From Thalia democratica (Eukaryota), in contig OZ241829.1 in assembly GCA_965202585.1 (NCBI GenBank), positions 29,636,001-29,700,000 on the forward strand: a stretch of DNA of 64,000 nucleotides. The letters run 5' to 3'. Both the position numbers and the translations under genes were made by a program. This document shows, one piece after another, positions 21,501-63,300 of this stretch. Positions within the stretch are counted from its first letter, which is position 1; the number at the start of each line of letters is the position of its first letter. The notes below the pieces were generated by a model, which was given only the letters and a program-made list of their open reading frames with translations, had not been told where the DNA came from and ran no database searches.

Positions 21501-24500
21501 AAGTACCTTGTAGTTGAAAACATGAAAGAGGTTATTTAAAAAGTACAATTGCTTAGTACTACAATACAATGCAAAACAAGTATGTAAATAAAAAGCTTAT
21601 GTGCTAAAATTTTCAATTAAATAATAATTTCAATGTATATGATAAGTAAATTCAAAAAGTTATTAAGATAGAAGAAAGTTGAAGAATTTTATAACTCCTG
21701 CTTAAAAATAATTAGAATACTTAAGTTGTTTTAAACATCGTCCAATAGTATTTTTTTTCTTGATGGTTTGTATAACGAGTGTAGAACTTTAAAACAAACC
21801 TTAGCTAAATTGTATCATTTCTAACCTTAAGTATTTGATGTTTGAAAGTTATATTCTGCAGAAAACTTAAATAATAATTATTCTATAATCAATTTTATTA
21901 GATGTGAAACATCTCTAAATTTAGGTACCTTAGTGCTGTATAAACTAACAAAAGTACTAAAGGAAAAAATAAAAACAGTTATGTTAATACTTACTCTTTA
22001 AGCAACTCATTGGGTTGGCTGTGTCGAAAGGTGGTGAAAGTGCTCCATTTTGGCAAGTTCTTTTTGGCACATCGGTCGAAAGGGAAGCATACCCTTCTGA
22101 ACAGTTGTAAGTTGTACTTTGGCCATGATTAATCGGCGCTGCTGGATATGGCTGAGAGTTCGTTACAGTATGAAAATCATTGCAATCTGAAATTATTTTA
22201 GTGCTTTGATCTTTAAATTTTTAAAGTTTTTTTCAATATTGTTATTTGTTTTTACTTGCTGACGTATATGTGCAATATTCTAAAGTGCATATTATATTAG
22301 AATAATTTTTTACGGTAAGATGGCGGTACTGATTACATTTATGTAATGAATTATGTAGCTTTAGAAGTTTTCAATATAAAACTTGTGTATTCAAATAAGT
22401 TTTAATTACTGTTAGGACTTTAATTACGTTCTGTTCTTTAAGTTACCAAAAGTTACAGTAAAACTTCATTTGAATCCGAAAAACTTTAGATTTTTAGACT
22501 ATGAAAAACTTAACATTTTCGAAATATAAATTAAAACAAATTCCACTATGTTAGTGTTTTCAACTTACTTTGGTAACATATGACTTCAGTATCTGGATTG
22601 AGCTCGCCGTCATTACAAGTTCTAGTATCGTCCCCGGTCAGTGTGTAGTTTTCATTGCATATAAAAGTTACAGTTTCTGAAGAAATATAAACCGTCCTAC
22701 CGTCTTTAGTATCACCGTTCGCAGGCTTGGTTATTGTGCACTCTGTTTATAACAGTACTTTGGTTTTAAAGTTTGTAGCAAACAATAATGCTTAAAAGCT
22801 ATAATTTAAGATTTATATCAATTTTAATGAAATTTTGCAAGCCGAATTGAACTTCTAACAAACATGTTAAAACCTTTTTGTTTGATAAACTTGAATAAGT
22901 ATAACTGAAGCTGAAACACTTTTATTAATTTTACAAAAAAAAAAACACAAAGAAGTTAAACAACCAAAAAATACTCTTATTTAAGTACCTTGTAGTTGAA
23001 AACATGAAAGAGGTTATTTAAAAAGTACAATTGCTTAGTACTACAATACAATGCAAAACAAGTATGTAAATAAAAAGCTTATGTGCTAAAATTTTCAATT
23101 AAATAATAATTTCAATGTATATGATAAGTAAATTCAAAAAGTTATTAAGATAGAAGAAAGTTGAAGAATTTTATAACTCCTGCTTAAAAATAATTAGAAT
23201 ACTTAAGTTGTTTTAAACATCGTCCAATAGTATTTTTTTTCTTGATGGTTTGTATAACGAGTGTAGAACTTTAAAACAAACCTTAGCTAAATTGTATCAT
23301 TTCTAACCTTAAGTATTTGATGTTTGAAAGTTATATTCTGCAGAAATCTTAAATAATAATTATTCTATAATCAATTTTATTAGATGTGAAACATCTCTAA
23401 ATTTAGGTACCTTAGTGCTGTATAAACTAACAAAAGTACTAAAGGAAAAAATAAAAACAGTTATGTTAATACTTACTCTTTAAGCAACTCATTGGGTTGG
23501 CTGTGTCGAAAGGTGGTGAAAGTGCTCCATTTTGGCAAGTTCTTTTTGGCACATCGGTCGAAAGGGAAGCATACCCTTCTGAACAGTTGTAAGTTGTACT
23601 TTGGCCATGATTAATCGGCGCTGCTGGATATGGCTGAGAGTTCGTTACAGTATGAAAATCATTGCAATCTGAAATTATTTTAGTGCTTTGATCTTTAAAT
23701 TTTTAAAGTTTTTTTCAATATTGTTATTTGTTTTTACTTGCTGACGTATATGTGCAATATTCTAAAGTGCATATTATATTAGGATAATTTTTTACGGTAA
23801 GATGGCGGTACTGATCACATTTATGTAATGAATTATGTAGCTTTAGAAGTTTTCAATATAAAACTTGTGTATTCAAATAAGTTTTAATTACTGTTAGGAC
23901 TTTAATTACGTTCTGTTCTTTAAGTTACCAAAAGTTACAGCAAAACTTCATTTGAAGTCTAAAAACTTTAGATTTTTAAACTTTGAAAAGCTTAAAATAT
24001 TAGAAATATAATTTAAAACTAATTCCACTATGTTAGTGTTTTCAACTTACTTTGGTAACATATGACTTCAGTATCTGGATTGAGCTCGCCGTCATTACAA
24101 GTTCTAGTATCGTCCCCGGTCAGTGTGTAGTCTTCATTGCATTCAAAAGTTACAGTTTCTGAAGAAATATAAACCGTCCTACCGTCTTTAGTATCACCGT
24201 TCGCAGGCTTGGTTATTGTGCACTCTGTTTATAACAGTACTTTGGTTTTAAAGTTTGTAGCAAACAATAATGCTAAAAAGCTATAGTTTGTTTATAAGTA
24301 TTTTATATATTTATTTGATAATTTTACAAGCCATTATTAAATTTTTGAATCTTTAAGGCTTTAACTTTATGTATAACAAAAGATTATGTTTATAAAACTA
24401 AAAAAACTATACTAAAATGAAAGTTGTTGCTTGTTGATAATATAGTTCAAAACTTGGGAAACTTGGTAATTTTTACATATTGCAAATCATTTTCGTTATT

Positions 24501-43208: not shown

Positions 43209-46200
43209 TTAAGGAAGGCTGAAAGCTTTTTTTATGAAAGGATTGTCTCTGTGTCTTCGCACAAAATCCGGACGTTTTCTTTCTGTGAAAAAATAAAAAA
43301 ATCGTTATTAACTCACGTCTTTAAACGAGCACAAATTCAATCTGACCGTTGTATTCCAAATCACCAGTGAACTGCACGTCGTTTTGGTACTGGTGGTTGA
43401 AGTACTCGAACCTTTCGAGCGTGAACTCGTCGGCCGCCACAGTTTCCTTCTTGTATTCTTTGAACGACAGCTCGAACTTTGCCTTCACTCCGCTCGGGTT
43501 GTAAACTCCTTAAAAATACACGTGAGATGTGCAGGTATAAAGAAATGCAGTGACGAGGTTTTAAAAAGCTCAAAAAATAAAATGCAGCAGGGACACCAAT
43601 AGCGTATCTGCTTTAAGAGATCTTAATCTAAAAAATGAATGGGGTTAAAAAATTATAAAAAAGCTATGATACTGTTTAAACGAATAAGAAAACTAATCTT
43701 AAAGATATAAAGATTTTTATCATTGTGTTAGTGTATAATAAAACTGTAAATTACTTTATTAAACACAAAAAAAATAAACAGAAAAACTTGATGTGCGTAG
43801 CAAAAAATAGTTCAGTTTAGTTTATTTCGGTTTTATAAATTAATTCATAATTAGTTCAAATACAAAACTACTATTAAAAAAAAGTCTAATAACTCTGAAA
43901 TAAGTGTGAATAGGCAACATTTTTTATCAAAAGTAAGTAAATATAAGCTGTAATAATTAATATTACTTTTATAATTATAACTAAACTTTTAAAAACTAAA
44001 ATGTTCTCAAAACGGTAAGGTACGCATTTCACGTAAAGTACACACTTTTATATGGTTTCTTGGTGCGTACCCTACCAATGTCATTACTTTATTCGTTTTT
44101 AGATAAATACAAAATACAACCATGAGCTTTGTGACTAGTTTTTTTTTCAAAGCTGGTATTAATTGTTTCCAAACTTCTCGTGAAACCAACCGAACTTAAT
44201 GTAAGGAACTCTCCCTTGCGCGTTTGCCCCGATAATAACCGGCAACTGATAATCGAGGTAAGAAGATTGCAGCTTGCCGTTAACTTTCAACTTCATTAAA
44301 CCGTTCCACGTTCGGATACCGGGGTCTCCAGTGCGACCGAGACGTTCCATTTCCTAGTTTAACTTTTAGCTATCATTTTAATGCTTGATGATAAACTTTA
44401 AACATTTTAATCTTCCTACTAGCTTAAGCTACTAGTATATAATTTCTCGTTAATTAGAAACTCTATAGACTTTATCTTATTTTATTAAAAAACAGGTCTA
44501 AAGTTCTTGTAAAAAACTTTCAATAATATTTTAATACAATTTGTTGCTTGTTTTTCATTTAAGTGACTGCACCTGAAATATCTAATACTTTATAAATTTC
44601 TAAGCTAGTTAAATTAAGTAAAAAAAAATCAAATAACTTCATCTGTAAGGAGACCGTACTCGCCCCAATTTATAATCCACTCAAATTCAGTCCATTCCTG
44701 CTCTTCGAGAACATCTAGCGGAATTTCGTGAAGAATAATCGCCTAAAAAAAAGAAAAAATAAAGAAAATATTTTTAGAAATAATAAAGAAATATCTTTTT
44801 AGCGTTTTATGTTGAAAATAAAGTTTGAAACTAAGTTGAATTTCTTTTCGTTAGAACTTTTTAGAAAAACTTAACTCTAAATGGAAACAAGTCTGTCAAT
44901 TTTAAATTTGCCCAGATATTATTATTTTACACAATAAACCCTTTTTTTTTGTTCTGATAAGATAAACTAGCAAAATGTTATGTAAGCTTAACTTTTAGTA
45001 TAATATTTTAAAAACAAAGTGATAAAACAACGTGTTGTTCGGCCCGACCGTCTTCAACGCACACAACTTTTTTCATCCCACTCATTCGGCACTTTCCTTC
45101 AGTTTTGAAGTACCTTTCGTCCGATCTTGCTGTCACTGTCAGCTTGCCTGCAAGAGCAGTTTGTTGTAATTTAATTTTTACACGCTAGCCTAAAACAATA
45201 AAAATAAATTGTTTACCAAAAAATTAAGCAGTGGTATGCTGTTCTATATAATTGTACACTTTTAAAAATGTTTCAAAAATCACATTATTACTAGTTTCAG
45301 CATCAAAACATTTTCGTAATTTACCTTACATTAAGTTGTTTTGTAACGATATGTATATTCTGTTGTTTTTTTAAATGACCGCCTAGGGGCGTTAGATGAT
45401 TGTTTATCAAATCACATAATAAAACTTTAATAGTTTTTGTTTTTACGCTCAGTTAGCCATAAGACCGTGCGGAGGGCACACCAAATTTAAGACTTTGAGA
45501 CACCAATTGAACTTAAGAACTTTTTAATGATGTTCATTTTATAAGAACTTTATTTTATTTGTATTATTTTGTTGCATTGTGCTTAGTTTAGTCATCGTTG
45601 TGCATGAAGTACGACATATATTAAAACTCTGTATTACAAGTAAAACCTATTTTTGTATTTAAGATTGTGACATTCAGACAGTTTTAGAACGTTATTAAGA
45701 ACATTTTTAGTTGTAGAATTTTGTGTCTACTTGTTGTGTTTATTTTCCCAGTTGTATTCTACTGATATAGTAGCTGCTCTATCACTTCTACTTTCTAGTT
45801 TCCATATTAATATTACTTTTTCAATAAACTCACTTCATTAAAGAAACTATACATATTAAGTTTATTACATATTTAATAGTTACTAAGTTAAACCTAATGA
45901 GTAAGGTAAATTCAGTAAAAGCCTCAAGAGCTAATCACTCAAAGCGTTCAGCTCAAAAAAGGGGACTTCCCCCAATTAAAAATAGTTCCTACCACTGGTT
46001 TAAGGCTACAGTTTTACAAACAGAGTCATAGCTTATTTCGTATATAACTTCGTACACGTAAAAATCTAAAAATTGCAAACTAATTTCTATATTACATATC
46101 ATTTCAAACAACTAACTCTTGTTCCTGTCGTAATGAACTGAAAGAAGGGGGTGTCCCCCTCTCTGAAAGCTTATTCGCTGCCCTCCCGCTTCGAAACCTG

Positions 46201-49200
46201 AACGCGTAGAATAATAATCAAATTAATCTGATTAACTTTTGTAGTTTCCTTAAAAGTTAACGTTTAGTATTTAATTTAGTATTAATACTAATAAACAGTT
46301 TCATACACTATTTCAAAGATAAATTAAACACTTGTAAATAGACTTGAACATGGAGGCGATCACCACAAAAAAAATAGAAAAAAATCACCAACCGGCCGCG
46401 TGCTCGCACGGGAAATGGGAGCATCCCCTGAACAGCTCCTCATTGGTCAGCCGTATCGGAACGGGGTCTTCCCCCACGGTGATGACGCGAGGGTCGGGCG
46501 AGTTGTGCCACTGAGTGATCATCACCCGCCGCATGGCCGCTCCGGCCTCACCCGATTGGACGAGGTCTCTCAGTTTCATCTTGTACTTGTACACGTGGCT
46601 GGCGTGTCGCGTCATCGGCTCGTTGGCCGCCGGGCACAGCGTTTGGAGGAGGGGCGGCATGACCGGGTCTGTGTGACGTAATAACGCTTGGGGTGATAAT
46701 GTGTGACGTAAAATTTGTGTGGTAAGAATGGGTGATGTCTGATGAACAAACGAGTTTGATAAAATTTTGTTAACTTTAAATGACAGTGAAAATCTATATT
46801 GAAGATTGCTAATTTTTTTGTAACTGGTAGCAGGTGTGTTAAACATTGATTTTTTCATAATATTTAGTCAATACTTTTCTTGAAGTTTTGGAACTATTTG
46901 TTAGAATTTTAAGCAGTTTATTAAACTTATATCTTTTAATCATTTCTGCAATAAATCCAGTGAAAAATTTGATGAAATAGTTGTGAATAAAAACGTTTAG
47001 AGATGAGATTGTAGAAGTATAACGACATATTTTCATACAAAAATTTTTCTAAACTTTAGCTTTTAAAACAGTTACAGCTAATGAAAAGTACATTAAAATA
47101 AAACTTAGATAAACACTTTAATATTGAAAATTATTTCTCTATATCAATGGTCTTCAAGGCGTGCACATTTAGGTTAATTTGCTGTATATAAAAAAGTTAC
47201 AATGGTTAAAAAAAAATGCAAATGACGTTTTTTGTTTTTTTCTATGGGAAAAAGTTAATGATAACACAAACTAACAGTTTTTAGCACGTTATTCATATAT
47301 TCTATCTCATAAAACCAAAATAAATTCTTGTTCTTGATAACAACTTACATTTTAATAGTCTAGTTTGCAAATAATTTATTTTTCAGTAATTTAGTGTGCA
47401 CAGTGTTTGAAAATATTAAAAACCAATGCTCTAGAGTCATTAAATGTTTACTTGACAACAACAAAAATTAAAAAGCTAAAATTGTTTTAAGGTATTAAAA
47501 ATAAATTGAGAAGGTTTATTTAAAAGTTTTTAAACATTCAGTTTATAGTAGACGTTTTCTGATACTGTCGAAGTATCTGTTGAAAATAAAATAAATAATT
47601 TTAAAACAAAAAATACTTTTTATAAGGAAATTGTTGTTTATATCATTGTTAGTGACGTTTTCTTTGAAATATTTTTCAGTTACAAAACACGTGCTGATCT
47701 CTATCCTGGACTTTTCATCTTTTTTTTTATTATCCAAGTTGTCGTATACAAACCTAAAATAAATATGAAACTTTGCTTTTTTTACTCTAGTCGTTTAGCA
47801 GTCAAAAACCGCTTACGTTTTTATTGAATTTTATATATCAACAAAACAAGTTTAAGCACAATAACTTTTTAAACAACTTTAAAATATTTGTATGATACCA
47901 CGTTAGTTAATTTTATAAAATTTTGGTTCTAAAACCTTTGAACATTTAATAGCTGTAAAAATGTCTACTCTTTTAAAGAGAAACAACATGAACAGCAACC
48001 AGTGAATTAAAGTTTTTACACACTACTACAATAGTTCTAGACATACTAATATAAACTAAGTTGAAAATAGTTATAATGTTTACAGTTTTTAGTTTTATAG
48101 GCTAAAAATGAGAAAACTTGCACTTATAATCTATTCAGGTATAAGATATTTAAAACAAATGACGAAGTACCTGTACTGATAGGAAGGTTCACTGTTTTCA
48201 TTTATGGGAAAATACTTTTCAATGTAAAATTTTGTCTTTTTACTGTTTGAAATTTTCAGTAAAACAAAATTACCTGGAAGAACCTGTTCTGTAAGTACAT
48301 TAAATTTTTTTTTTTTGAAGAAACGTTCTTAGCTTTTTTGTTTTTTACGCCAAGTAATAAGTACACTTTATTTACAATCAGTAACATAATTTTTGATAAA
48401 AGTTTTAAAATGCAATAATTGTAAAACATTTCTATAACTACATACGAAAATCCTACAAAGTTATCTCTTAGTTTCTGATTTACTTCAAACCTTCCCTGAC
48501 CAGTTTCAAGAACGGTCTCGATTTCGGCCACTTGTTGCAAGTGAAATTCGATGAGGCCGCCTTGAGACCGGTGCAGTCCCATATTTCACCAGATTTAGTT
48601 TTATTTCTCAACAGTTTAATACCTGTTTGCAAGGATTAGTAGATTAACTTTAAAAGAAAGCTAAAAAAAAACGTAAGTCAAATTAAAAGCGATCCTAGCT
48701 GTTTTTGTTTTAGAAAGATGGCTACTGTACGACTGGATAACCAATAACTGTGGTGTGAAACTCGATAACTAAAAGGTTTCTTCATACACCAGGTGCTTAA
48801 ACCAGACTTTTTGGACGCTTTTTTTTTTATCGTTTTATAACCAATATATACACACTGCCGTAGGGGATGTTCAACATCACTGGTTAAAAATATATACTAC
48901 GGTCATCTAAAATGAATGCTGTAACAAATTAAACCTTATTTATAAATAAAAATTTTATATGTAAACAAAGTTGAGAACCTTAACAAAATATTTAACATTA
49001 AAAGAGTTTAGTTTGGGTTTTTGACATAAAGCAAGTTAAAAGAATATTCAATTTGTTTTTTACTTCTAACACAAAAGTACTACTTAAGTTTAAAAACCCT
49101 TTTATTAAAGTTTGTGTTAAACGCATACTGTGATTAAACTACTTTTACTTCTAAAGTAATATGCAATGGTCTTTTGTACAACTCTCTTCCTGAAACTTTG

Positions 49201-50028
49201 TTAACAAATGTAAAAAATAGTAACAGTTACCACATAAAATTTTTGCATGCAAAACAAACAAACTGACTGCAACTCAACCCATCTCCTTGGAAACCAGGGT
49301 TGCACATACACTTGTAATACTCCTTATTCTCGTAGTTGTATTTCAAGCAGTAAGCATCTGCGTGACAAAACTGACAAACGTCTTTTTCAAATCCTGTATT
49401 TTAACAAATTCCCACGTGATGTCATTTTGATTATAATTTATTTTTGTACAGACAACAGATGTTTTTTTTTTTGAAAAAAAAGTTAAATTGACAATAGTTG
49501 TATTGAAGCATTAATTCTTTTTTTATTGTAACTTACTTTTTTGACAACATGTTTTACCAAATCTAAAAACAGTAACGAGTATAAATTTCTGGTTTTAAGA
49601 TGTTGACATTTCAGAAAACATGAGTTATAATTTAGTAATTGTTCAGTAGCTTTGTAAATTTTGACACTAAACAACTGTATAATAATAAATATTAAAAAAA
49701 TACATAATTTGTGTTACATTAGTGTGCTACATAAACAGTTATTGTAAAGTTATTGCAAGTTTAAATTAGTTGTTGTGTAAAGTTTTCGTAAACATATTAA
49801 CTGAACTAACTTAGTTTTTTAATTTTATTTCATAAATGTATGCTGTTTAAGGTTTATGTAAATACTTCAGTAATACTATAAAACTTATTATGCTTAAATA
49901 AATATATTACACAAAAAAGCAAAGAACTACTAGTTATTTTAAATCCTTTGGTTTCGTCATTTAAGCAAAAACCATCGACTTCATAGGTTTCACACTTGTC
50001 TTCTCTACCACCAAAAGCTAGGGTTGAA
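43209..50028 (-). CDS. Spliced gene: EGF-like domain + heparin lyase I (heparinase I, PL13)-like domain; 5' start exon not located
   Basis: Phase-consistent GT-AG exons: 49931-50028 (tentative), 49268-49393 (EGF), 48491-48622, 48171-48288, 47617-47753, 46393-46668, 46117-46197, 45032-45147, 44638-44742, 44191-44353, 43347-43508, 43209-43282 (stop TAA). The joined translation contains EPSYQYRF..KSRIEIS, VMITQWHNSPDPRV, FQRGGHPLL, TARSDERYF, IPLDVLEEQEWTEFEWIINWGEYG and VIIGANAQGRVPYIKFGVYNPSG. These are colinear with heparinase I motifs as I recall them (KPSYRF, KGRTELS, IFAQWHG, EQGGYPTL, KANSDRQW, CWITFDVAIDWTKYG, ILIGRNDDDGYYFKFGIYR). Confidence 0.85.
43347..44353 (-). CDS. Two lyase exons forming the YxKFG/VY catalytic-Tyr motif
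   Basis: 44191-44353 (EMERLG...IIGANAQGRVPYIKF-G) is spliced in phase 1 to 43347-43508 (GVYNPSGVKAKFELSFKEYKKETV...); the intron interrupts the KFG|VY motif. Confidence 0.85.
44638..44742 (-). CDS. Lyase exon with the WxxFxxxIxWxxYG motif
   Basis: AIILHEIPLDVLEEQEWTEFEWIINWGEYGLLTDE; 105 nt, phase 0-0. Confidence 0.85.
46393..46668 (-). CDS. Lyase exon carrying the QWH catalytic-His motif
   Basis: PVMPPLLQTLCPAANEPMTRHASHVYKYKMKLRDLVQSGEAGAAMRRVMITQWHNSPDPRVITVGEDPVPIRLTNEELFRGCSHFPCEHAA; 276 nt, phase 1-1; matches ORF 46385..46858. Confidence 0.9.
49268..49393 (-). CDS. EGF-like domain exon (phase 1-1)
   Basis: FEKDVCQFCHADAYCLKYNYENKEYYKCMCNPGFQGDGLSC: six Cys with the CxCxxGFxGDGxxC EGF signature; 126 nt with AG/GT flanks. 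Confidence 0.85.
49931..50028 (-). CDS. Putative N-terminal exon of the lyase gene
   Basis: STLAFGGREDKCETYEVDGFCLNDETKGFKIT; polypyrimidine AG acceptor; phase 2-1 end compatible with the EGF exon. The upstream ATG exon was not found. Confidence 0.5.
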
Positions 50029-50701: not shown

Positions 50702-53432
50702 CAGTGGCGTAGCGTGGTATTTTGGTCAGGGGGTGCGCAAGTTTTTTCTCAAAAAATCCTCTAATTTAAAACTTCTGGGCCGCAAATTTTTCGAAGTCAA
50801 TTTTCTCGGAAATTTAAAAAAATACTAAAAATCTATCTCCTACTTCATTTTTCAAGCAACCTTCTTCAAATTAAAAAAATAATTTCTTACGTTACAAGAA
50901 AAAAACGTTACTTATGAATTAAGATAATTAAAAAAAAAAGTCTTTTTTTTTCAGAAAAAATATATTTTACTACAAATTTTTTAATTCACAAGTAATGTTT
51001 TTTTTATTGTATAAAGATTAAACTGTTAAAGTTTGAAGAAGATTTCTAGAAAAATGTAGGAGGAGATAGATTTTAAACAAACTAGCCTTTTTCGCTGTTT
51101 TAGTTTTCCCTTCCAATAGGTAACCTATTATGCGGCCCGACTTTGACTGGTCATATCTCAAAAAATAATTAGAACTTTTGAAAAGAACAAAAAGAATCTT
51201 AAAGCTTAAAAAAATCTTTCAAATAAGATCAACTTCTAAAAAACATGGCTTACCCCCCTCCCCTATGGCCTCAAACTACAAATAAATAATCAACTAGTAT
51301 AACAATTAACACCTCAAAACATTTTTCTCTGTGCAATTTCTAAATAATGTTCAATACCCATTTTATATCAACAAAAAAGAATTGTATTAAACTCAAAATA
51401 ACTCATACTTTTAGTTTGTTGCAGCTTTTAATATACTATCTTTATCTTTTATATAAAAATGTTAAATCTTCAGTACTAAAATTGTAAATTTTAAATCTAT
51501 AATTTTTTTGTAGGAGAAATCTAAAGAGCTAGTTTTTTTTTTTCAACTTCTACATTTTTACCTATATTACAATATAAAACTGTAAAAATAAATCTTAATA
51601 AATGAAGAAAATCTGAAATATAAACATAAAACCTTCATACCACTTGAACTGCAGTCTTGAGTAATAGCAATATCTGGTATTGGTCTGCTATTTTTCAATT
51701 CAAGCTTTTGAAATTCAGATAATTTTCCTACCTGACATATTTTTAGACTTGCAAAATTTCATACAATATTACTTTGCACATTTTAGAAAATAATAATCTA
51801 AAAAATAATGAAAACAAATGTTTACTTTTTCTTTAATATTATAAAACATATTTTACAAAAAAAAAAAACAAAAAAAAAACTTTAAAGATATCAGGGTTGC
51901 CTTGCCACTCTTTGAGTCAAAATAACTGTCCTGAGCAGACATGTTAAAAAGCTCTGCTTTGTTTACTCGAACGTGAAATTACTAACTTAAAACAAACCAA
52001 AGTTTATACGCTTTATTGCTGAATTACCATAGTAACTATTAGCATTTTACCAACTCTGGTCCTGAGCTAGTTTAAAAATGTCATAAGTCATCATAAGCAT
52101 TTTAAATTCTATTACAGAATTTTTTTATTGTTTTCAAACTAATAGAAACTAAGCTTTATAACAAAGCTTTTAAAACCACTAAATCTACCCTGAGTAAAAA
52201 AAATAATAATTCTATCCTTAGTCAGCCTGAGCTTAAAAATACTTAAAAAATTCTGAGTTATCATGATTTTTACTGAGTCATACTAAAGTTTTCCAAAACT
52301 TCATAAAATCCTGAGTTATCCTGAGTGTGTGGAAGGATTTTACTAAATGTTTCTGATACAAAACAAAATGTTTGAAAGATAATTTTTTTAAGGTCAACTT
52401 TTTCAATGCTTTTAAAATTCACAAGAAGTATAATTTTTCACTTATCTTTAAGTCAGTTTTTCTAAGATCTCTAGAGAAAAGCATTTTTAAATACTACAAA
52501 CAGTTGGTAGAAAGAAATTTTTTTTAAATATCATTTAAAATTTGATTTAAAACAAATAAATTTTAATTTAAAACTAATCAACTATGTCTTTTAGAGTAAA
52601 AATTGATTGTAAAAATTTTGTTTTACAGTTGCTATAAATTCATTCATGATGTGACTAAAGAAATTTTAAAATTACTTGCTACAAAAATTGATTAATCTTT
52701 AAACTTTATGGCTGATAAAATAACAAAGTTTGATTTGTTTGTTATCTTAATAAAAAAAAATACTTTAAAAAAAAATTTTAAGTTTAGGTAATTTAAACAA
52801 TACTTTTTGTATAGTGAGATTAAAACTGTAATCACAGTATGAACTGTTTGTTTATCATTTTTTTTATTCTATTTTTTTATTGGTTTCTGTTTTTTTTATT
52901 TTTCTTTTAAATTATGTTGTTAATATTTTTTATTCTTATTATAAATTAGTTTTTATTTATTAGCAGTTGTTTATTGCTATTTTTACTACAGTTTGTTTAT
53001 TCTTGAATCATTATCACTATAAAACAGGTTTAGCTTTATGGTTTGTTAACAAAATGTTTGCATTTGTCCTTATAAAAAACCAGTCATAAGGTTATACTAC
53101 TGCGGTGCACTAACTAGTTGCGTACTGTTTGAGTCTAAATTCTTATGAAGTTAATGAAGTTAAAAAAATTTTCCTTATGGAGTTTTTCATCAACATCGGT
53201 GCGCATTTGCAATTACGCACCGAATCAGTATACTGGGTAATTTCCCTAACTTGTCACTTATTGGTATTCGAAGTTTCGTTTTACTTTTCGAATAGTAGAA
53301 AAACATAGTTGAAAAAAGGCAAATTAAGCAAAAAAAAAACAATAAAGGATAAAGATACTGCATTTTTTTTTTACTTATTTTTTTTTGGGGTGGCACGCAT
53401 GCGCCAGCGTCCCTCCCAACGCTACGCCCCTG
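50702..53432. mobile_element. Non-autonomous hAT-type DNA transposon (2731 bp)
   Basis: TIRs CAGTGGCGTAGCGT / ACGCTACGCCCCTG; 8-bp TSD CTTAGTAG at 50694-50701 and 53433-53440; absent from the duplicate copy near position 360; no transposase ORF. Confidence 0.9.
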
Positions 53433-54380
53433 CTTAGTAGTATGTATAAAAATAATATTACTGTGCTCAAAAATAATAATTTTTTAGCATTTAATTTAAC
53501 TACTTATTATTAGCATTACTTAATTATTAGAATCTACTTTTAGAATTTACGATTATTTTGTTTAACTTTTATTTTTCAGGTTTAAATTGTAACTGAATAT
53601 CCTTTAAAGGGTGAAACTTAGTTTTGAAACTAAAAATCTTTAATAATTAATTTTGTACTAAATACATGTAATAAATGTTCAATACTTAATATTTTTCAAA
53701 CTTTTTTTTTTAAATTTTGAGAATTCTAAAATGCGTAACTAAAGGAGAGTGCGTAACCAAAGGAGCGCGTAGATTCGCGAGAGGTGACTGTACTAAGGTT
53801 TTACATAAAAGAAAACAGGAAGTAAACATTACAATTTATTTTGATAAAAATACACAACTGATTATAAAGTTCTAAAGTTTAAAAAAATTATATTTTTTAT
53901 ACTCGCCAAATTTTACATTACAAATTGTTAAAGCTTAAAATTGGTTTTAAACTTATCATACATTAACGCTTGGCTTAATTGATAAACTTGAGTTCTCAAG
54001 TTCTTTGTAGTGAAGTTAAGTAAAAACAAAACAAAGGTAAACTCTTATAATTTATTACTTTATGTACTACATGTAAAAAAGCATTTTATTAATTTGTTTT
54101 TGTTAAAATTAATCTTTCGAATTAAAAAAAGTAAAAAAAAACATGCAGAACGGTTACAAAGTCACAGAAGACACCCAAATATATGTGCCTTGACAGCATG
54201 GTGCACAGTTTGCATAAGTCATATTTAGGTAAAGTAACTTAATCAAATTTTGTTTTAAGAAAAGGTATAAAGACTTTAAATAATTGATCAGTTAACTGAA
54301 AACGTTTAGTCGCCTAAAGTTTCAGGCTGGTGTCAGTAAAAAATTAAACAATTAACTTAATGAATGCTTTTAGTGATAGT

Positions 54381-57300
54381 CTAGCAATGGAAAAGCTCAA
54401 ATCGCAAGGTCCATTGTAGATAGTGTGTTACCAAAGTGATTCGAAAATATCTTGCAGTAACTGGCACTGGTAGCCTATTGATATGAGGCGTGTCATAGTG
54501 TTTATTTGCCATAAAAATCTACAAAATATTTACTTTAGTAAATTTACAAATACAAAATAATTAAGAGTTATTGATAAAAACTAATTGATTTTTAACATAC
54601 GTTTATTAAGTATGATTTGACCATTTTTTTTATCAGTTTCAACAAAACGGGTTGTTAACCAGATTTCGAATTTTTAACAAATTATTTTCACCTCGTAATA
54701 AAAAAGTTGCATAGTACTAGGAGCAAAAACAATCAAATATTAGGTAAAGTAAAGTGGTTTATGAAAACTAAAGTTGTTTTTACGAATAAAAATAATCTCT
54801 TACCAATAAAAGTATATATCACCGTTTTAAGTCAAATTTTTTTTTAGTCATATCAAACCCAAAAACGTGTTGTAGCTGGTGTAGGTTAGTTTACATTTAC
54901 AGTAAAAATCTTTTTGACTTAGTTATGTAAGTTAATTTGTCCTGGACAAGACGTTAAAGTGTATCCAAGTGGTGTGCGACTCGATAACCGAAATGTTTTT
55001 TCGTGCACTAGGTCCTAATATTTTGTGTGCTTTTTGTCGTTCAATAAACAATAATAATAGAAAGTTAAGCTAATAAAACTAGTAAAAAGCGTTCAAATGT
55101 CACTGTTCTTTTAAAATTTTTGGTGAAAATATAAAAACATGCTTGCAATTTACATATCCAATTCCCTAATTTTAATGCTAAGTTATTTATGATTGCGTTT
55201 TAGGATTACACGATGTAGAAATGTTGATGGCAGTTCTCTAGTAATCATTATGAAGAAATAGTATGAATAGAGATATTTTTAGTAACTTTACTAAAACTTA
55301 CAAATATTTTTTTGTGATGAAAAAAAGAGGTGATACAATATTTTACTCGTTTTTATTCTTGCTATATACAATTTTAATTTTTTGTCTGTCTATTTAAATA
55401 CTTTAGATAGTAAAAAAAAAAGTTCACTTTAATAGGTTGACAACAAAGTATAAGTACATTAAGCAAGAAAACAAAATTGACGTTTTCTTAATAACAAGAA
55501 TCTTCATTTAAAAAACAAAGTATCCTTTTTCTTGATTAAAAAATAAAATTAAAGAAATAATAAAACTGAAACTGGTTTAAAATATTTTTTATTCAAGACA
55601 ATGCTGTAGAAATTTGAAGTATTCTTTTATAATTGGAATAAAAATATTTTTTAGGATTTCAAACACATATACCATAAAAACTTGAATTAGTATTTTTTGA
55701 TTTTACCGGGAATTAAAGATCATCTAAACTATTTTTTTTGTATTTTTGACATATTAAATGTCTTTTAGACATAAGCTGCTTTGATATCCCATCTTTTATA
55801 TTCTACGAATAAACTTTTAACATATGCGCCAAATACTTATTTGATAAATTTAAAATTCTCTATGAAATTTAGATAACGTTTGAAAAACTTTTAGTTTTGT
55901 TTGCAATAACGAACAAGTCAAAAAATAAATTCGACTAGATTTGAAAAAAACTAGAAAAATAAGAACGTTTTAAACTTACAACAATTTTTCCACTTCCGTC
56001 AACTACATTTTGTAATTCGTCTTCAGAGTTAGTTTTATACTGGCAAGAATAAGAAGTCGTATATGGATTTTTACCTCTTCCCTGCGTTGCAACTTTGTGA
56101 ATTGTTCTTTCTAATACAAGGTCTACTTGAATCCATTTCTCTTTTAGGGATGTTTTAAGTTAGTGAAAAAATGCATTGAAATATCACTAACAACTAATAA
56201 AAGCAGTGTTTACTTAAAAGAAGATAAAACATCACTAATATTATATTGAATGGTATATTTGTTCCCAGTTACAAAAAAACATAATTTCCAACGTTACATA
56301 GTAAATGCCGTAGCTTTTAAAGTTAAGTTTAAACCGTTTTTTAGAAAAATACTCAAATTCCGTATTGAATGTAGGTATTCAAAATATTTTCTTTTAGAAA
56401 AAGTAGCCGTAAGTTTTTTTTTTCGATCTAAAAGCACTGTATGAAAATCGAAAACCTGATTGAATGAGAAAAGTGCGCTAACCTGGAGCTCGATGAAAAA
56501 TGGTCCAAGCGAATGGTTCAAATTCGAACAGTCGAGCAAACTGCGGACCAAACCTGCATTTTGTTGGCGTTTCTTCGTAACAATCGTCGACATCGTCGTA
56601 AGCGTAACCGCTTGCAGTCACTTGGCTGTTGGTGATGGTGCCGCTGGTCATTCCCAAACCGCACGCTTCAACTGTGATTTTTGGTGTGAGTTCAGCTTTA
56701 CTGGTTCAACTTAGAAACTGCTTGTTTTTAAAAGTTTAGCTTTTTTTGTCAAGGGCTCTGAGGTTTTATAGTTCATGTGTGGTACAACGACAAGTTTTTT
56801 CTCGTAGCCCGTTTTAACAAGTGGTCTAAAGTGACTTATTGTATAAAATTAAAATCACATAACATCACTCACGTAAAACGACTTAAACGCTTTGCAAAGC
56901 AAACCACATGGTTTCAAGTTGTCTACAATAACAAAACGTCTCTCAAAAGTACTGACGATACTAATTCTTACTTGATAATGAAATTTTTGAACATAAAAAT
57001 ATTAACCGACCTTCGGCCTTAACGGCGGCTCTGTCGCACCCCGGGGGGTTCACCCAATCTCCAAGCCCGGGATTTTCTTCGGTCACATTGCACTGGGCAA
57101 TTCCGCTGCTCACTGTTTTATCGCAAAACTTGGAGCTTTCGCAAACAAAGTCAAACTCCTCCGTGCTCACGTACTTTCCCGGTACCACGACGGGATCTCT
57201 CGGTGTTAAAGTGTCCAGGCACAAGGAGTACTGCAAGTCCGGACACTCTGTCGCGTTAAATTTCAGTACACTTCAGTTGCCTGAGCGGACGCACAAAAAT

Positions 57301-60300
57301 AGTTTGAAAACTAACGCATTAGATTAATGCCATAAAGTAGAAACGATTATAGCTGATACGTGTACAATAAACTTAAAATAAATACATTACACTATGTATT
57401 CTTTATTAGTGTTCCCTTTCTATTTTATTAATATTTTAATCTGACTTGAAAGTGTTAAATAAATATTTTTCTCCGTTTTACGTATGCCATAAACCATTAA
57501 AAACAGAAAACAAAGCAGCTAAGTCATTATCAACTTAAACTGAAACAAATGATATTGTTTTCATACCTTTCACACATATAGGAGCCTCAGAACTACTCCA
57601 TTGTCCGTCGTGGTCGCAAATGTTTATATTTGAAGAGCCTGGCCACACAACCAAGCCGTTTTTGCACCTGTACTCGACTACAGTGTTGGTCAGCATTCTA
57701 CCATCCGCTTCACTGCTAGAAATGACAAAAAAATCAGTTTCGTCGTTTTCTGGTAAATCTTGGCATTCTGTGTAAATAAGAGCTTTGATGAAAGCAGTTG
57801 TTATTTAAAAAAAATATGTTGCAGATGTCTCTTACAGTTTTCAAACCGTGTAAAGTTTATAATTTGGATTTTAAAGAATATACACAATTTTTAAATTTTT
57901 TGTTACTATACACTAAAAGAAAGCTTTGAATAAAGAAGCAAATTTTTTTTTTAAGTTTTATATTTAAACCACAGCTTTGATATAATTAAAATTTTAGTTC
58001 TTAATCTTTTTAAACTTATCAAGCCAAAGAACTTAAAGTTTTCAATTATATAACTTTAAAATATAATTTACTATTAGGCTTTTTTGGTAAAAACTTAGAC
58101 TATTTTATTTTATTGAATTACAAAATAAAACTGTGCTTCGGTTGTCAAGTCTAAAAAAAAGTGCTATTTATAACGCTTGCCAAAATAACAGACTAGCAAA
58201 AACTTTAAGAGTGTAGCATAGACGTAAAATTTAAGAACTCAAACTCATTTGTTTAACACAGAAACTGTAGAAAAGTGAAAGGTTGTCTACCGTTTAATAG
58301 GATTTTCAATTAAAGAACACCTCTATTCAAAATTCAAAACATTGAACCTTTAAGGCAGGCTGCGCGGTCCTTCCACCCCATCGTTGTGCACTCTATCCGT
58401 CCGGTGTCGGGCCGAGGTATGGCTCCCGGGTCGCACGTGAACTCGACGGTTTCGCCGTGCGTGTACTTCTGATCCGCGTCGAAATGGTACTTTCCGTTGT
58501 GGAAGTCAGGAAGCGGACTCGGACAATCTGTTCGAGTCATTCCATTCATTTATGCGAATAATTTACTTTTGTGTTATTGAGAACTTGAATTTTTATGATG
58601 GTTAGAATGATTTATTGTTTTTTTATAAATTTGTCAAAAACTAATCCGTAGAGAAGTGGAGTTAAAAAATTTATAATGTAGATGATTTAGTTTAGATTAA
58701 AGATTGCTTTCCAATTATTTTAAATACAAAGCCTAATTGTTTTTATGCACATGCAAACATAAATGATTCTATACATTAATAAAATTACTTTCAAAGTATA
58801 ATAAAACTTTTAATATTATAATTGATGGCATATATTACGAAATAATGAGAATAAATATATTATGAGAAATATTAAGTAAAAATAAAAACATGTTTTTTTT
58901 TTTGTTTTTAACACAAGTACAAAACACGTTTTTTTGATGTTTAAAAAAAACATCTTTTTCTAAACTTAAAATTTACAAATGTTTTAATTTTATAACAAAC
59001 TGTGATATGTAAAGCAGACAATTTTATTATATTAGTAACAATCATATTAATAATCATTTTTCAAACTATTTTAAATCTCACATTAGTTCTAAACGTGTTT
59101 TATTTTTTTCTTTGCAAACTTACCTTAGTTATATGAAAAAAAAATCTTAAAATGTACAATCTTGTCAATGAAATTACGCCATTTTCAGTTTGAAACCTAC
59201 CGTCGTATACAAAATTTTTGTCTATTACGAGAGCATTAAAGTTTCCATCGTATTTACATTCCGCCCAGCTCGGAACCGCAGCGTGTTCTGGAAATCTGCC
59301 AGTAAGTACAGCCCAAGATTCTGAGTTGCCTAAAAAAAAACGATTTCACCAGGTTTGCCAGGAGTAATATTTTGAAGTAGGGCTTTTAAAAACCTGGAAA
59401 TAGTGTGCAGTCTTTCAAACGATCAATACCGAGTCTTCTCATAGTGTCAAACACCGGACCATCAGTGTTAATATTTTTCTCTGCGGCTGCTTGCCCACGT
59501 ACTGTCATCATGATAATGTCCCCGTAACTTGAGTTATTTAATATAAAATCTGACATTCGTACAATCTGAAATTTAAGAACTAAATTGTATTTTGGTTTCT
59601 ATGTCAAAAAGTGTAGATGATGTTTGGTATTTTTAGCATGTGTTTTCGTACAAGATGTTATAAAGTGTATAGTGTTAAACAATTATTAAATACTATTTTT
59701 CAGTTTAAAGCAAAAATTTTTTTTTCTAGCATGCTGTACAGAAGTTAGTACCTCATGTATTATTGTTATAACTTAGATTTCTAAATAATAAAAACTAAAA
59801 TTAAGAAAGAGTAGTTTTTTTCTTATGGATTTGGATTTATGTAAATAATATAAAGTCTAAATACAATAAAGTTTATATAAAACCTTTCTAAAAATAAAAA
59901 ACGGAAATTTCTGTTATACTTTTAGCTGCGTAATTACAAAAATATTTCTAGAGTTATTAAACAAAGCTTCAACTCAGCGTGGAATATCTTAAAGTTATTT
60001 TACTGAATTAAATAAAAAAAGCTTCTAAAACAAAAACTCTAATTTTTGCTAAACCGTGCTTAAAGTCTGAAACAAAATTTATCAAAAAAAAACTGTACAT
60101 GTTCGTGACCCCGGACAGTGTCAAACTTCATCGATTGGATAGTTCTAGTAATTGGATCGAGTATGGCAACGCCGATTCCTCTGGTACTATCGCACAAATT
60201 GTTCCCACCCTTTTCAAACTTGATTACGCAATTCTGTCCCAAAGCATTCGTGTCATATCCTCGTGATAAGCCATAAGCATACAACTCAGCTGAAATTGAA

Positions 60301-63300
60301 GCATTTAAACAGTTACGTTTCGCGTTTACGTTTTCTGCTTGTGCCTGTATAACAGCTAGCTTACTTGGCTCGCAGACCGGGGGCTCAGTGTGATCCCAGG
60401 TACCATCATCTTGACAGGTTATTTCTTCCGGATACTCGCCAGCCATTTCGTGAAACTTGTCGCACTCGTAGCTGTGCACAGTTGTTCCGGGTAACCAAAC
60501 TTCATCGGCTGTTTCGTATGTAACTTGGTACTTCGAATAACCGGTTGTGGGTGGGTCTGGACAAACTGTGTTAAACAGCATGGTTTTAACGCTCTTTTTT
60601 GTTGAGTTTTGTAGACAAAACTTTGCTTAGTTTGAAGAATTTCAACTCATAGTTTTATAAAATCCTAAAATTTTTCATTTTAAAAAATTAAAAATTGTTT
60701 AAAGAGACGCTGGTTTTCGTTTGGTGTTAAGCTTTAAAAGTTATTTATTCTGGATAAGTTACTTTGTCCGATAAAATTGATATACACTGTTGAAATTTTG
60801 CGAAAATTAGGTACTTTTAATATTTTATCTTTATTATGAATACTTTTTTATGATTTTTGTTTGTTACCTACAAAATAAATATAAATAAAAAAGAAGCAGA
60901 TTATTTGTGTAAACAAACGTTAAGATTAAAACTATAAATTATTCATTATCACTTAAAGTTTAGTTACAAATGTAAAATTTAAGTTCAAGGAACAAACTAT
61001 AAACACCTTAAGTTATAAAAGTCATTTAAGATTTTGACAATTGCTACATTTTTGATCTTTAAAGTATTTAGTTTTAATGCACAAACTAAGATGTTTTGAT
61101 AGTGTCAAAAATTGTTTTAATAAAAATCTTAATACTCTGACTCGGCTATCTTGTTAATTAGAAACATATTTAAGTTCATTAAACGAAAATTAACTGTACT
61201 TAAGAACCTTATTGTTGTATAAACAAGCTTTCTAATTCAGCAAACGTCGTTCTTACTGAAATTCATGTGACTTACGCTTGGAACATTTAGCTTGCGCACC
61301 CCAACCGGTTTCTCCACACTCAATCACACCACTTAGTGGCCATGCTCCACTGTCGCATTTAAAACCAACGGTATCACCTTGAGCGTAGTTGCTTGAAAGT
61401 TCTTCGTCGTAGTCTCCGTTTGCAAATTCCGATGGCTTTGAACACGCTGTAATGATCAAACAGTTGAGGGTTTGAGCAAACAAAGTTTGCCAGCAGTTAA
61501 ATACGACCTTTTATTTTTGATAAAGTCAATGCAAGAAAGACGTAAATGTAAGTCCGTAGTAAATAACTTTAGATAATAAAAGTAAGATGTCATTTAAATC
61601 ACCTTCAATGAAAAAACAAACTAGTTAGGTCACTAACTTTACCTTAACATAAGACAGATAAGCAGTATGAAATATACAGAACTGACATATAGGTACACAA
61701 GTAGCCAAATCTTCTGTTGACACGCTGAAGAGTCCACTTCCAAGGCACTCTGTAGAAAGTGCTTTGGAGTTTTCTCCGTGAGCAAAATACCCGGTATTGC
61801 ATTCGTAACTCAAAGTAGTTCCTTCCGTAACATACTTTTCAGGATTATTGAAAGTTCCGTCAACTATCTCTGGCGGATCATTACAAACTGAAATAATATT
61901 CAATAAGTTTTTAAGCTTTAATGACTAAAGACAAATTGATCATCAAATTAAAAACTAATGCTCTCCTCTTGATAATTTTTTTAATGCTTATTGTTTAATA
62001 AAGCTGAACAAGTTATCAAAGTAAAACACTCGTAACTTTTTAGAATTAGAAAGCGAGTTTTTAAAGTTTTTGGTTTTATCAAACTTAGCCAGAAACTTTT
62101 TTATTTAATAGTCATCTATTATTACACAAAATTAAAACTGTATATGTTTCAGAAATTTATAATTTCTAAATCTACTTATTAAAATACTGTTTTAAAAAAC
62201 TTAGCATTCTTAGATTTCAATTTGCTTTTACATTACTACTGGCAGATTCTTACTAGTAGTCCCAAGTTGTGTTGCTGAAATTTGAATTACCTTACCTAAC
62301 AGCTCTAAAACTTAAATGAAATAGTTTTTTTTATAATTATATTCAATTTCTTCTATACTGCTAAGAATTTATTAAGTAAGCCTATATAAATAGTATATCC
62401 ATTTTAAAATTAAAATTTTATTTTCAAGATATGATTCATTTAAGTTTTTATAACAATTTGAATTGTAAGATTTCAAATGTCGAAATTTAACTGTCAAGTA
62501 ATTTTATTTACAATATAATACGAAAAATCTAACGCTTAGTTAAGTAAGTATTTATAGTTATGCCGCAAAAACTGATAAATCTTTAACTAAACCCATACTT
62601 AAAAATAAAAATCACTTAAAAAGTTCAAAGTTTGATAAAAGACTTATAAAACGCACAATTAAAGTTACCTAAGACTTGTAAATACATTTTAGTGGTAGTT
62701 TCGTTGTTACAAACTTTTATTTTTAATTTAACTAGATTTTAAGTATACCTCAATTATTGTTTAATTTAGTTACCTTATATTTATGTAAAATGATACAATC
62801 ACTACGATAGAAAAAGTGGTAATTTAAGTACAAAAACTTAATATTGGAACAATAATTAATTCTAAAAATTATATTCTGCAGAAAGCTTAGATAATATAAT
62901 CTTATAATCAATGTTTATAGATGTGAAATACCTCTAAACTTAGATACCTTAGTGTTGTATAAACTAACAAAAGTATTACAAGGAAAAAGTAAAAACAATT
63001 ATGTTAATACTTACTCTTTAAGCATCTCATTGGGTTGGCTGTGTCGAAAGGTGGTGAAAGTGCTCCATTTTGGCAAGTTCTTTTTGGCACATCGGTCGAA
63101 AGGGAAGCATACCCTTCTGAACAGTTGTAAGTTGTACTTTGGCCATGATTAATCGGCGCTGCTGGATATGGCTGAGAGTTCGTTACAGTATGAAAATCAT
63201 TGCAATCTGAAATTATTTTAGTGCTTTGATCTTTAAATTTTTAAAGTATTTTTCAATATTGTTATTTGTTTTTACTTGCTGACTTATATGTGCAATATTC

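Follow-up and report, generated by a model that had tools for sequence, protein, structure and literature searches.

Can a gene with the introns and EGF module of an animal gene encode a lyase of a bacterial type? The question is raised by a locus in a 64,000-nt window (the whole stretch of DNA analysed here) of the Thalia democratica assembly GCA_965202585.1, contig OZ241829.1, positions 29,636,001 to 29,700,000. An initial annotation, made from the letters of this window, had proposed that nine exons splice into a heparinase I of polysaccharide lyase family 13 (PL13) fused to an EGF module. All coordinates below are positions in the window, and the lyase gene lies on its minus strand. The gene is real, intron-bearing, and nuclear. 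We consider it probable, at about 0.72, that the locus represents an old transfer from a bacterium to a tunicate and now encodes an extracellular uronate-glycan lyase, whose expression, fold, activity, and substrate are predicted.

Affinity to heparin lyase I

The gene model was built by chaining short stop-free pieces of the minus strand bounded by AG and GT. It comprised 11 exons (50028–43321) that formed a single open frame of 499 aa, ended by a TAA at 43323–43321, and consisted of a Cys-rich exon, an EGF module, and a lyase domain of approximately 390 aa in nine exons, the length and exon number that had been annotated. The ends of three of these exons (48622–48484, 47753–47617, and 44742–44638) were set by homology to paralogs. 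All 10 introns were of the GT-AG type, with lengths of 195–969 bp. The GC content was 47% in the exons (64.5% in lyase exon 4; GC at third codon positions, 58%) and 26% in the introns. The longest open reading frame (ORF) in the region 43321–50028, whose GC content is 26–32%, was 157 aa. None of the nine lyase exons was recognizable alone, as had been stated, and the per-exon searches of Pfam and PDB returned no match above threshold.

Bacterial proteins for comparison were picked by the motif GGYPPLAF, which yielded approximately 80 loci with heparin lyase I, including those of Pedobacter heparinus and Bacteroides thetaiotaomicron; in a later search, the proteins picked in this way were found to be named heparin lyase I and to carry PF14099. 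A hidden Markov model (HMM) of heparin lyase I, built from 59 Bacteroidota proteins, matched six spliced proteins of the tunicate, one from the window gene and one from each of five paralogs, with 27–63 bits (E 5e-10 to 7.5e-21). The final window protein scored 32.1 bits, while the best of 2000 shuffled sequences scored 6.6 bits, and thus the match is not due to chance. In the reverse direction, the tunicate HMM was run on 2333 bacterial ORFs, and every ORF that it matched was a heparin lyase I, with E values as low as 1.8e-18. Alignment of the tunicate family with heparin lyase I using hhalign gave a probability of 99.1% (E 1.7e-18) over 303 columns. The profile search of the spliced exons, which had been proposed as a check, was therefore in line with the annotated kinship.

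The affinity was specific within the Pfam family. The tunicate family HMM gave 36–57 bits for heparin lyase I and at most 12 bits for other PF14099 members, which were gathered from approximately 850 genomes of three phyla (Bacteroidota, Planctomycetota, and Verrucomicrobiota) and presumably have the same jelly-roll lyase fold. In a maximum-likelihood tree, the six tunicate proteins formed one clade (support 99), and a branch with a support of 95 separated this clade and heparin lyase I from the other PF14099 members. The window protein had the longest branch within the tunicate family (4.09). A second PF14099 protein of Pedobacter heparinus (C7:7105-7683; 299 aa, 62.7 bits) is not heparin lyase I, and the heparin lyase I HMM gave it only 5 bits.

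Judged by these profiles and the tree, the domain is related specifically to PL13 heparin lyase I, though at high divergence, as had been annotated, and not to other jelly-roll lyases. Heparin lyase I (B. thetaiotaomicron and P. heparinus; CAZy PL13, PF14099, PDB 3IKW/3INA) is collinear with it over approximately 300 columns, with the same spacing from GGYPPL to A-x-SD, at an identity of only approximately 18–25%. The annotated motifs (K-x-R-x-E-x-S, QWH, GGHPLL, ARSD, W..F...I.W..YG, IGAN, and YIKFG|VYN) were all present in the order of heparin lyase I. Unlike heparin lyase I, the tunicate protein has an extra C-terminal tail of approximately 50 residues, its gene has 5–7 introns inside the domain and EGF or membrane-anchor/mucin-like additions, and its activity is predicted only.

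Matches to the PF14099 profile itself were weak and all collinear. They comprised paralog exons and a metagenome fragment at profile positions 60–96, 98–137, and 144–192, and the exon pieces, as distinct from the spliced protein, scored 19, 13.8, 13.8, and 13.2 bits against a curated cut-off of 29.9 bits. A six-frame PF14099 scan of the whole genome gave nothing at E ≤0.001. No exon matched PL7 (PF08787) or PL14 (PF21294) at E values up to 10. An identity as a PL7 alginate lyase, which had been prompted by YFKxGVYN, was rejected because there was no PF08787 signal and the profile affinity was specific to heparin lyase I. When a profile of paralog exons 5+6 was searched against PDB, heparin lyase I was the sole non-ankyrin family retrieved, at E values of only 0.07–0.1; the designed ankyrin repeats that dominated this search share a GYTPLH-like motif and were discarded. 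The corresponding profile of paralog exons 7+8 retrieved nothing from PDB. A search for related loci with an exon profile found no bacterial relative. With a mixed bacterial/tunicate profile, only bacterial heparin lyase I was found among the best 120 matches, and this profile could not reveal eukaryotic relatives.

Exons, paralogs, and host genome

The Cys-rich exon (49931–50028) opens on a single split-codon base, and its end, in phase 1, joins the EGF exon in frame. Its pattern, C-x8-C-LNDxxK...CxxC, is that of the Cys-rich exon of the paralogs, and it had no Pfam match. The EGF module exon (49268–49393) is of phase 1-1 and contains six cysteines spaced C-x2-C-x5-C-x12-C-x-C-x10-C. With a GT donor at 49267–49266, which brings back the sixth cysteine, this exon matched Pfam EGF_3 with 30.6 bits (cut-off 28.5; E 4e-7), and the annotated EGF fusion was thereby borne out. 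A non-GT donor for the EGF exon, with which EGF_3 reached only 22 bits, was rejected, as was a 26-nt exon at 49562–49537 that disrupted the frame.

Lyase exon 1 (48484–48622) contains the N-terminal strands with a conserved Trp; its borders, cag|GT at the acceptor and GAA|gtaaat at the donor, leave the frame intact, and it aligned to the start of heparin lyase I in hhalign. Exon 2 (48171–48242) ends in EPSYQYR, which aligned to GKPSYRFEL of heparin lyase I, and the intron that follows it is common to all five paralogs. Exon 3 (47617–47753) begins with EKSRIEISTCFV and carries Lys81, Arg83, and Glu85 (residues are numbered as in Bacteroides heparin lyase I, with the offset verified on QWHGMPD). 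By paralog homology, its end was placed at a conserved phase-1 donor that follows CFV plus 17–22 residues, and an early end after CF was rejected. Exon 4 (46393–46668) contains Q-W-H with Gln149, His151, and Asp155. Two alternative in-frame acceptors for this exon, 46686 and 46668, lie within a direct repeat, of which 46686 would add six residues; an acceptor at 46738 was rejected. The direct repeat (46669–46740), immediately upstream of the exon 4 acceptor, has a 30-nt unit that includes TTACGTCACACA and is present as two units in the window copy and three in the third gene copy.

Exon 5 (46117–46197) reads FEAGGQRISFQRGGHPLL and contains the GG[YH]P motif, with Gln in the place of Glu222. 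Exon 6 (45032–45147), beginning with KLTVTARSDERYF, contains the A-x-S-D motif, and Trp248 is replaced by Tyr. Exon 7 (44638–44742) begins with IPLDVLEEQEWTEFEWIINWGEYG, has a frame-keeping donor (GAA|gttatt), and aligned to CWITFRVHIDWTVYG of heparin lyase I. Exon 8 (44191–44353) keeps Asn345 and Lys353, has Ala in the place of Asp346, and ends with IIGANAQGRVPYIKFG, where a phase-1 intron splits the Gly codon of KFG. Exon 9 (43321–43508) extends from VYNPSG to FVLV and the stop codon; Tyr357 is kept, and Arg358 is replaced by Asn. The catalytic His and Tyr, the exchange of the Arg after this Tyr, and the intron within KFG|VY were all as annotated. A possible alternative phase-1 donor lies in exon 9 at 43346–43345 (AACG|gtcaga).

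An ATG at 53363 (MQYLYPLLFFF...) was rejected as a start exon because it sits within a repeat, for which 1543 genome candidates were obtained at first look; 40 of these were scored, and all matched at ≥91%. This repeat (53270–53440), in which the ATG and a hydrophobic ORF mimic a signal-peptide exon, has a GC-rich end whose inverted partner is found near 50720–50790, approximately 2.6 kb off, and has the look of a miniature inverted-repeat transposable element.

The window gene belongs to a multi-copy family. At the protein level, exon 4 was matched at 100% three times on scaffold C5, at intervals of 53.2 kb and 44.7 kb; seven or more further matches, to paralogs on C4, C5, and C7, showed 40–43% identity. 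With further loci on C1 and C5, some of which contained stop codons, the family comprised 15 or more loci, spread over four scaffolds of chromosome scale (C1, C4, C5, and C7). Spliced models were built for five paralogs, and all of these were open and had GT-AG introns. Five intron positions were common to the window gene and the paralogs, including the phase-1 intron in KFG|VYNP (5/5 paralogs). Exons 5+6 and 7+8 were each fused in the paralogs, which corresponds to two extra introns in the window copy. Upstream of the lyase domain, the paralogs have a hydrophobic anchor, a Thr/Pro-rich stretch, and the Cys-rich exon, and most of them are predicted to be membrane-anchored on a Thr/Pro-rich stalk. 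Three of the five stop right after a conserved QHTG end. The window copy and the third copy differed by 1.94% in exons and 4.03% in introns, with 16 synonymous and 10 nonsynonymous changes, which corresponded to a rough ratio of nonsynonymous to synonymous rates (dN/dS) near 0.2. For the paralogs, the dN/dS values were 0.13–0.36, with saturated synonymous sites for the deeper pairs. The family is under purifying selection.

The window gene lies on an 85.7-Mb scaffold (C5), and host repeats lie inside its introns. In three DNA runs (two samples, two studies, and two organism labels), the exon–intron boundaries were contiguous, with even depth and <1% difference. No spliced joints were present in the contigs of these runs, which are thus DNA and uninformative on expression. 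In the mitochondrial COX1, Gly was the aligned residue for 71 of 95 AGA/AGG codons, and the identity to named proteins was highest under the ascidian code, which is in use across tunicates (PMC7047913). By its mitochondrial code, the host is a tunicate. The GT-AG introns (five of them common to divergent paralogs), the chromosome-scale scaffold, and this code agree with the annotation of an animal gene rather than a contaminant.

A catalogue of marine eukaryotes contained the nearest COX1 fragments (92%). Several COX1-like fragments in nuclear scaffolds (C4:56.84–56.94 Mb; C757), which contain many stops, are probably mitochondrial insertions. A GH6 scan, used as a tunicate marker, was blank and uninformative. 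In two intron stretches (45300–46100 and 48700–48900), the k-mer depth rose to approximately 78,000, compared to approximately 150–200 in the flanks, corresponding to very high-copy repeats. Hydra, which the AT-richness had suggested as a possible host, is ruled out by the mitochondrial code of tunicates; cuticle sweet-tooth/PPOD proteins were considered and found to be unrelated to the window gene.

Active site, substrate, and competing explanations

Lys81, Arg83, Glu85, Gln149, His151, Asp155, Asn345, Lys353, and Tyr357 were invariant in all six tunicate proteins. Catalytic roles of Gln149, His151, and Tyr357 were reportedly described by Han and co-workers in 2009. In the reading that we prefer, a bacterial heparin lyase I (PL13, PF14099) would have been captured, most simply once, from a Bacteroidota-like donor. 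The transferred gene would have gained spliceosomal introns and then either the EGF and Cys-rich modules (window copy) or the anchor and Thr/Pro-rich stalk (most paralogs), and it would have multiplied to the present number of loci. The product would be an endolytic extracellular lyase, in which Gln149 would neutralize the uronate carboxylate, His151 would take the C5 proton, and Tyr357 would protonate the leaving O4, and the cleavage would leave an unsaturated uronate end. The fold of PL13 is a jelly roll, like those of PL7 and PL18 (PMC12088678).

Several points weigh against this reading, and the first concern the active site. In heparin lyase I, the calcium site consists of D155, E222, W248, N345, and D346, and calcium was reported to be crucial for heparinase I (PMC6688311). 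In all six tunicate proteins, D155 and N345 were kept, and the remaining positions were changed (E222Q, W248Y, and D346A). The thumb was approximately 30 residues shorter than in heparin lyase I, and none of the lid residues that close over heparin (E73, Y75, K185, and D253; PMC6688311) was conserved. Given the shortened thumb, the loss of lid residues, and the exchange of two calcium ligands, the substrate is probably a uronic-acid glycan, likely sulfated, and not necessarily heparin. For the annotated heparinase, this is a probable point of caution: the substrate may differ from heparin. The candidate substrates may include matrix, tunic, or mucus glycans of the animal itself, or microbial and dietary polymers.

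The other points concern the gene model and the transfer. The predicted junctions of the window gene rest on the frame, the GT-AG borders, and paralog homology, and the sequence upstream of 50028 yielded no 5′ exon bearing a start codon or a signal peptide. The bacterial sample, as it was picked by the GGYPPLAF motif, is biased to Bacteroidota. The tunicate clade sits on a very long stem (8.2 changes per column), and its position within heparin lyase I was not resolved; with such a stem, neither the donor nor the direction of the transfer can be resolved. Thus, the phylogeny with bacterial PL13 that the initial annotation had suggested as a check recovered the grouping with heparin lyase I but not the origin of the gene.

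The alternative that survives best, itself doubtful, retains an active lyase and assigns it a digestive or anti-microbial role on alginate, glucuronan, ulvan-like glycans, bacterial capsules, or exopolymers instead of glycosaminoglycans. In its favour, the thumb and lid with which heparin is gripped are not kept; a language-model look-alike search with one exon set PL14, PF14099, and PL7 side by side, which is a lead only; and other transferred tunicate enzymes have been proposed to digest dietary glycans (PMC13390645). However, the sequence affinity is to heparin lyase I specifically and not to other PF14099 members, PL7, or PL14, and anchoring in the membrane on a stalk would be unusual for a gut enzyme.

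A more far-reaching version of the transferred-lyase reading is rather unlikely in our estimate. It proposes an endogenous eliminative system for degrading glycosaminoglycans in a chordate lineage, which would be held at the cell surface on mucin-like stalks. The window-type copies would then perhaps form the N-terminal head of a giant EGF–lyase–CCP–ILEI–discoidin protein, together with the neighbouring CCP gene described below, and would cut heparan-like or microbial acidic glycans in matrix or mucus turnover or in surface defence.

It is improbable that the domain lacks catalysis and is a lyase fold that only binds acidic glycans, as a module of a receptor for adhesion or recognition that also carries EGF, a mucin-like stalk, or CCP repeats. 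The same changes in the calcium site, thumb, and lid would be expected of such a module, and the anchor and stalk of the paralogs and the neighbouring or fused CCP giant are architectures of surface receptors. Nevertheless, Gln149, His151, Tyr357, Lys81, Arg83, and Lys353 do not vary among the six proteins, which are saturated at synonymous sites, and an early loss of catalysis is hard to reconcile with this invariance.

It is more improbable still that the three copies of the window type are not expressed or are in decay and that only the membrane-anchored paralogs work. The missing 5′ exon, the longest branch of the family, and GGHPLL in the place of GGYPP would fit decay, while all three copies are open with intact splice sites, their exons diverge half as fast as their introns, and all the catalytic residues are kept. 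Bacterial contamination or an assembly artefact, which could be suspected from the GC content of exon 4 (64.5%, against 28% in the genome), has a negligible probability given the ten GT-AG introns with host repeats, the 85.7-Mb scaffold, the paralogs with common introns on four chromosomes, and the three DNA runs.

If the transferred-lyase reading holds, the family represents a natural experiment in how a bacterial enzyme turns eukaryotic, with introns gained, exons shuffled, and the calcium site and thumb remodelled. If active, the family would be a source of heparin-lyase-like enzymes with new specificity, and one could then test directly if pelagic tunicates use elimination to remodel sulfated glycans of their own.

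Relatives elsewhere and the neighbouring CCP gene

An exhaustive protein search with exon 4, the sensitivity of which was low, found no annotated eukaryotic protein; three giant repeat proteins that it matched were rejected as compositional false matches. The only database relatives of exon 4 were short Tara Oceans metagenome contigs with a GC content of 28–33%, and the exhaustive search returned two marine metagenome fragments. The Tara fragments P0005 and P0019 were 60% identical to one paralog. Another fragment, P0004, scored 35.6 bits over approximately 80 residues with the bacterial HMM and 48 bits with the tunicate HMM; it is a eukaryotic copy that has diverged less and forms a bridge across the long stem. 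The distribution of the family seems limited to this genome's lineage and some marine plankton relatives.

The contig of P0004 (707 bp, 27.7% GC) reads AQWHGSPDPRIL, halfway from the bacterial AQWHGMPDRTLV to the tunicate SQFHNSPDPRII. Its coding similarity ends about where the tunicate exon 4 ends, and its best match in the genome is at C1:49.16 Mb.

To our knowledge, PL13-type lyases have been catalogued only from bacteria. The characterized animal cleaver of heparan sulfate is heparanase (GH79), a TIM-barrel hydrolase, which would share a substrate with the window protein if that substrate is heparan-like and is unrelated to it in sequence, fold, and chemistry. Animals are also known to have other lyases, such as the PL14 alginate lyases of molluscs and the pectate lyases of nematodes and insects. 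In the literature searched, no papers linking heparin lyase or PL13 with animal gene transfer turned up, and heparin was not mentioned in a 2026 compendium of metazoan transfers. A 2026 survey of Ciona reported eight transferred groups and no polysaccharide lyase (PMC13390645). The Polysacc_lyase Pfam domain is listed for robust corals as an uncharacterized table row only (PMC6214176). The coral entry and the PL14 and pectate lyases resemble the family in being animal eliminative enzymes of microbial type; however, they belong to different CAZy families with plant or algal substrates, and none is a PL13 relative in a chordate.

The carbohydrate enzymes transferred to tunicates (CesA, GH6-1, and the eight Ciona groups; PMC13390645) are a closer parallel, being of bacterial type, fixed with introns, and thought to underlie tunicate extracellular chemistry. 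A selected, intron-bearing, multi-copy PL13 family would be a second clear case, after cellulose synthase, in which bacterial carbohydrate chemistry has entered the extracellular biology of the animals nearest in kinship to vertebrates.

A giant CCP (sushi) gene (3891–37643, minus strand) neighbours the lyase gene on its downstream side, in the same orientation. It has an ATG at 37643–37641 followed by a signal-like stretch, and a phase-1 acceptor at 37566–37565 lies just before the first CCP cysteine. ILEI-like and discoidin-like parts form the end of the CCP gene. The lyase gene and the CCP gene recur together as a block, at the 53.2-kb and 44.7-kb spacing. The lyase gene somewhat more probably ends at its own TAA, as the homologous stops of the paralogs suggest; splicing of the lyase onto the CCP exons through the phase-1 GT at 43346–43345 is a little less probable, though a serious candidate.

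The 3′ parts of two CCP copies (3891–8815 and 56964–61924, minus strand), approximately 53 kb apart, were nearly identical. In one exon, a CCP module is joined to an ILEI/FAM3-like stretch (ORFs 6979–7479 and 60060–60581), and the last exon of the upstream CCP copy, near 54380–54500, has a discoidin-like look. Within the CCP gene, positions 9800–24228 contain ten near-identical two-exon CCP cassettes (66 aa and 78 aa) with a period of approximately 1482 bp.

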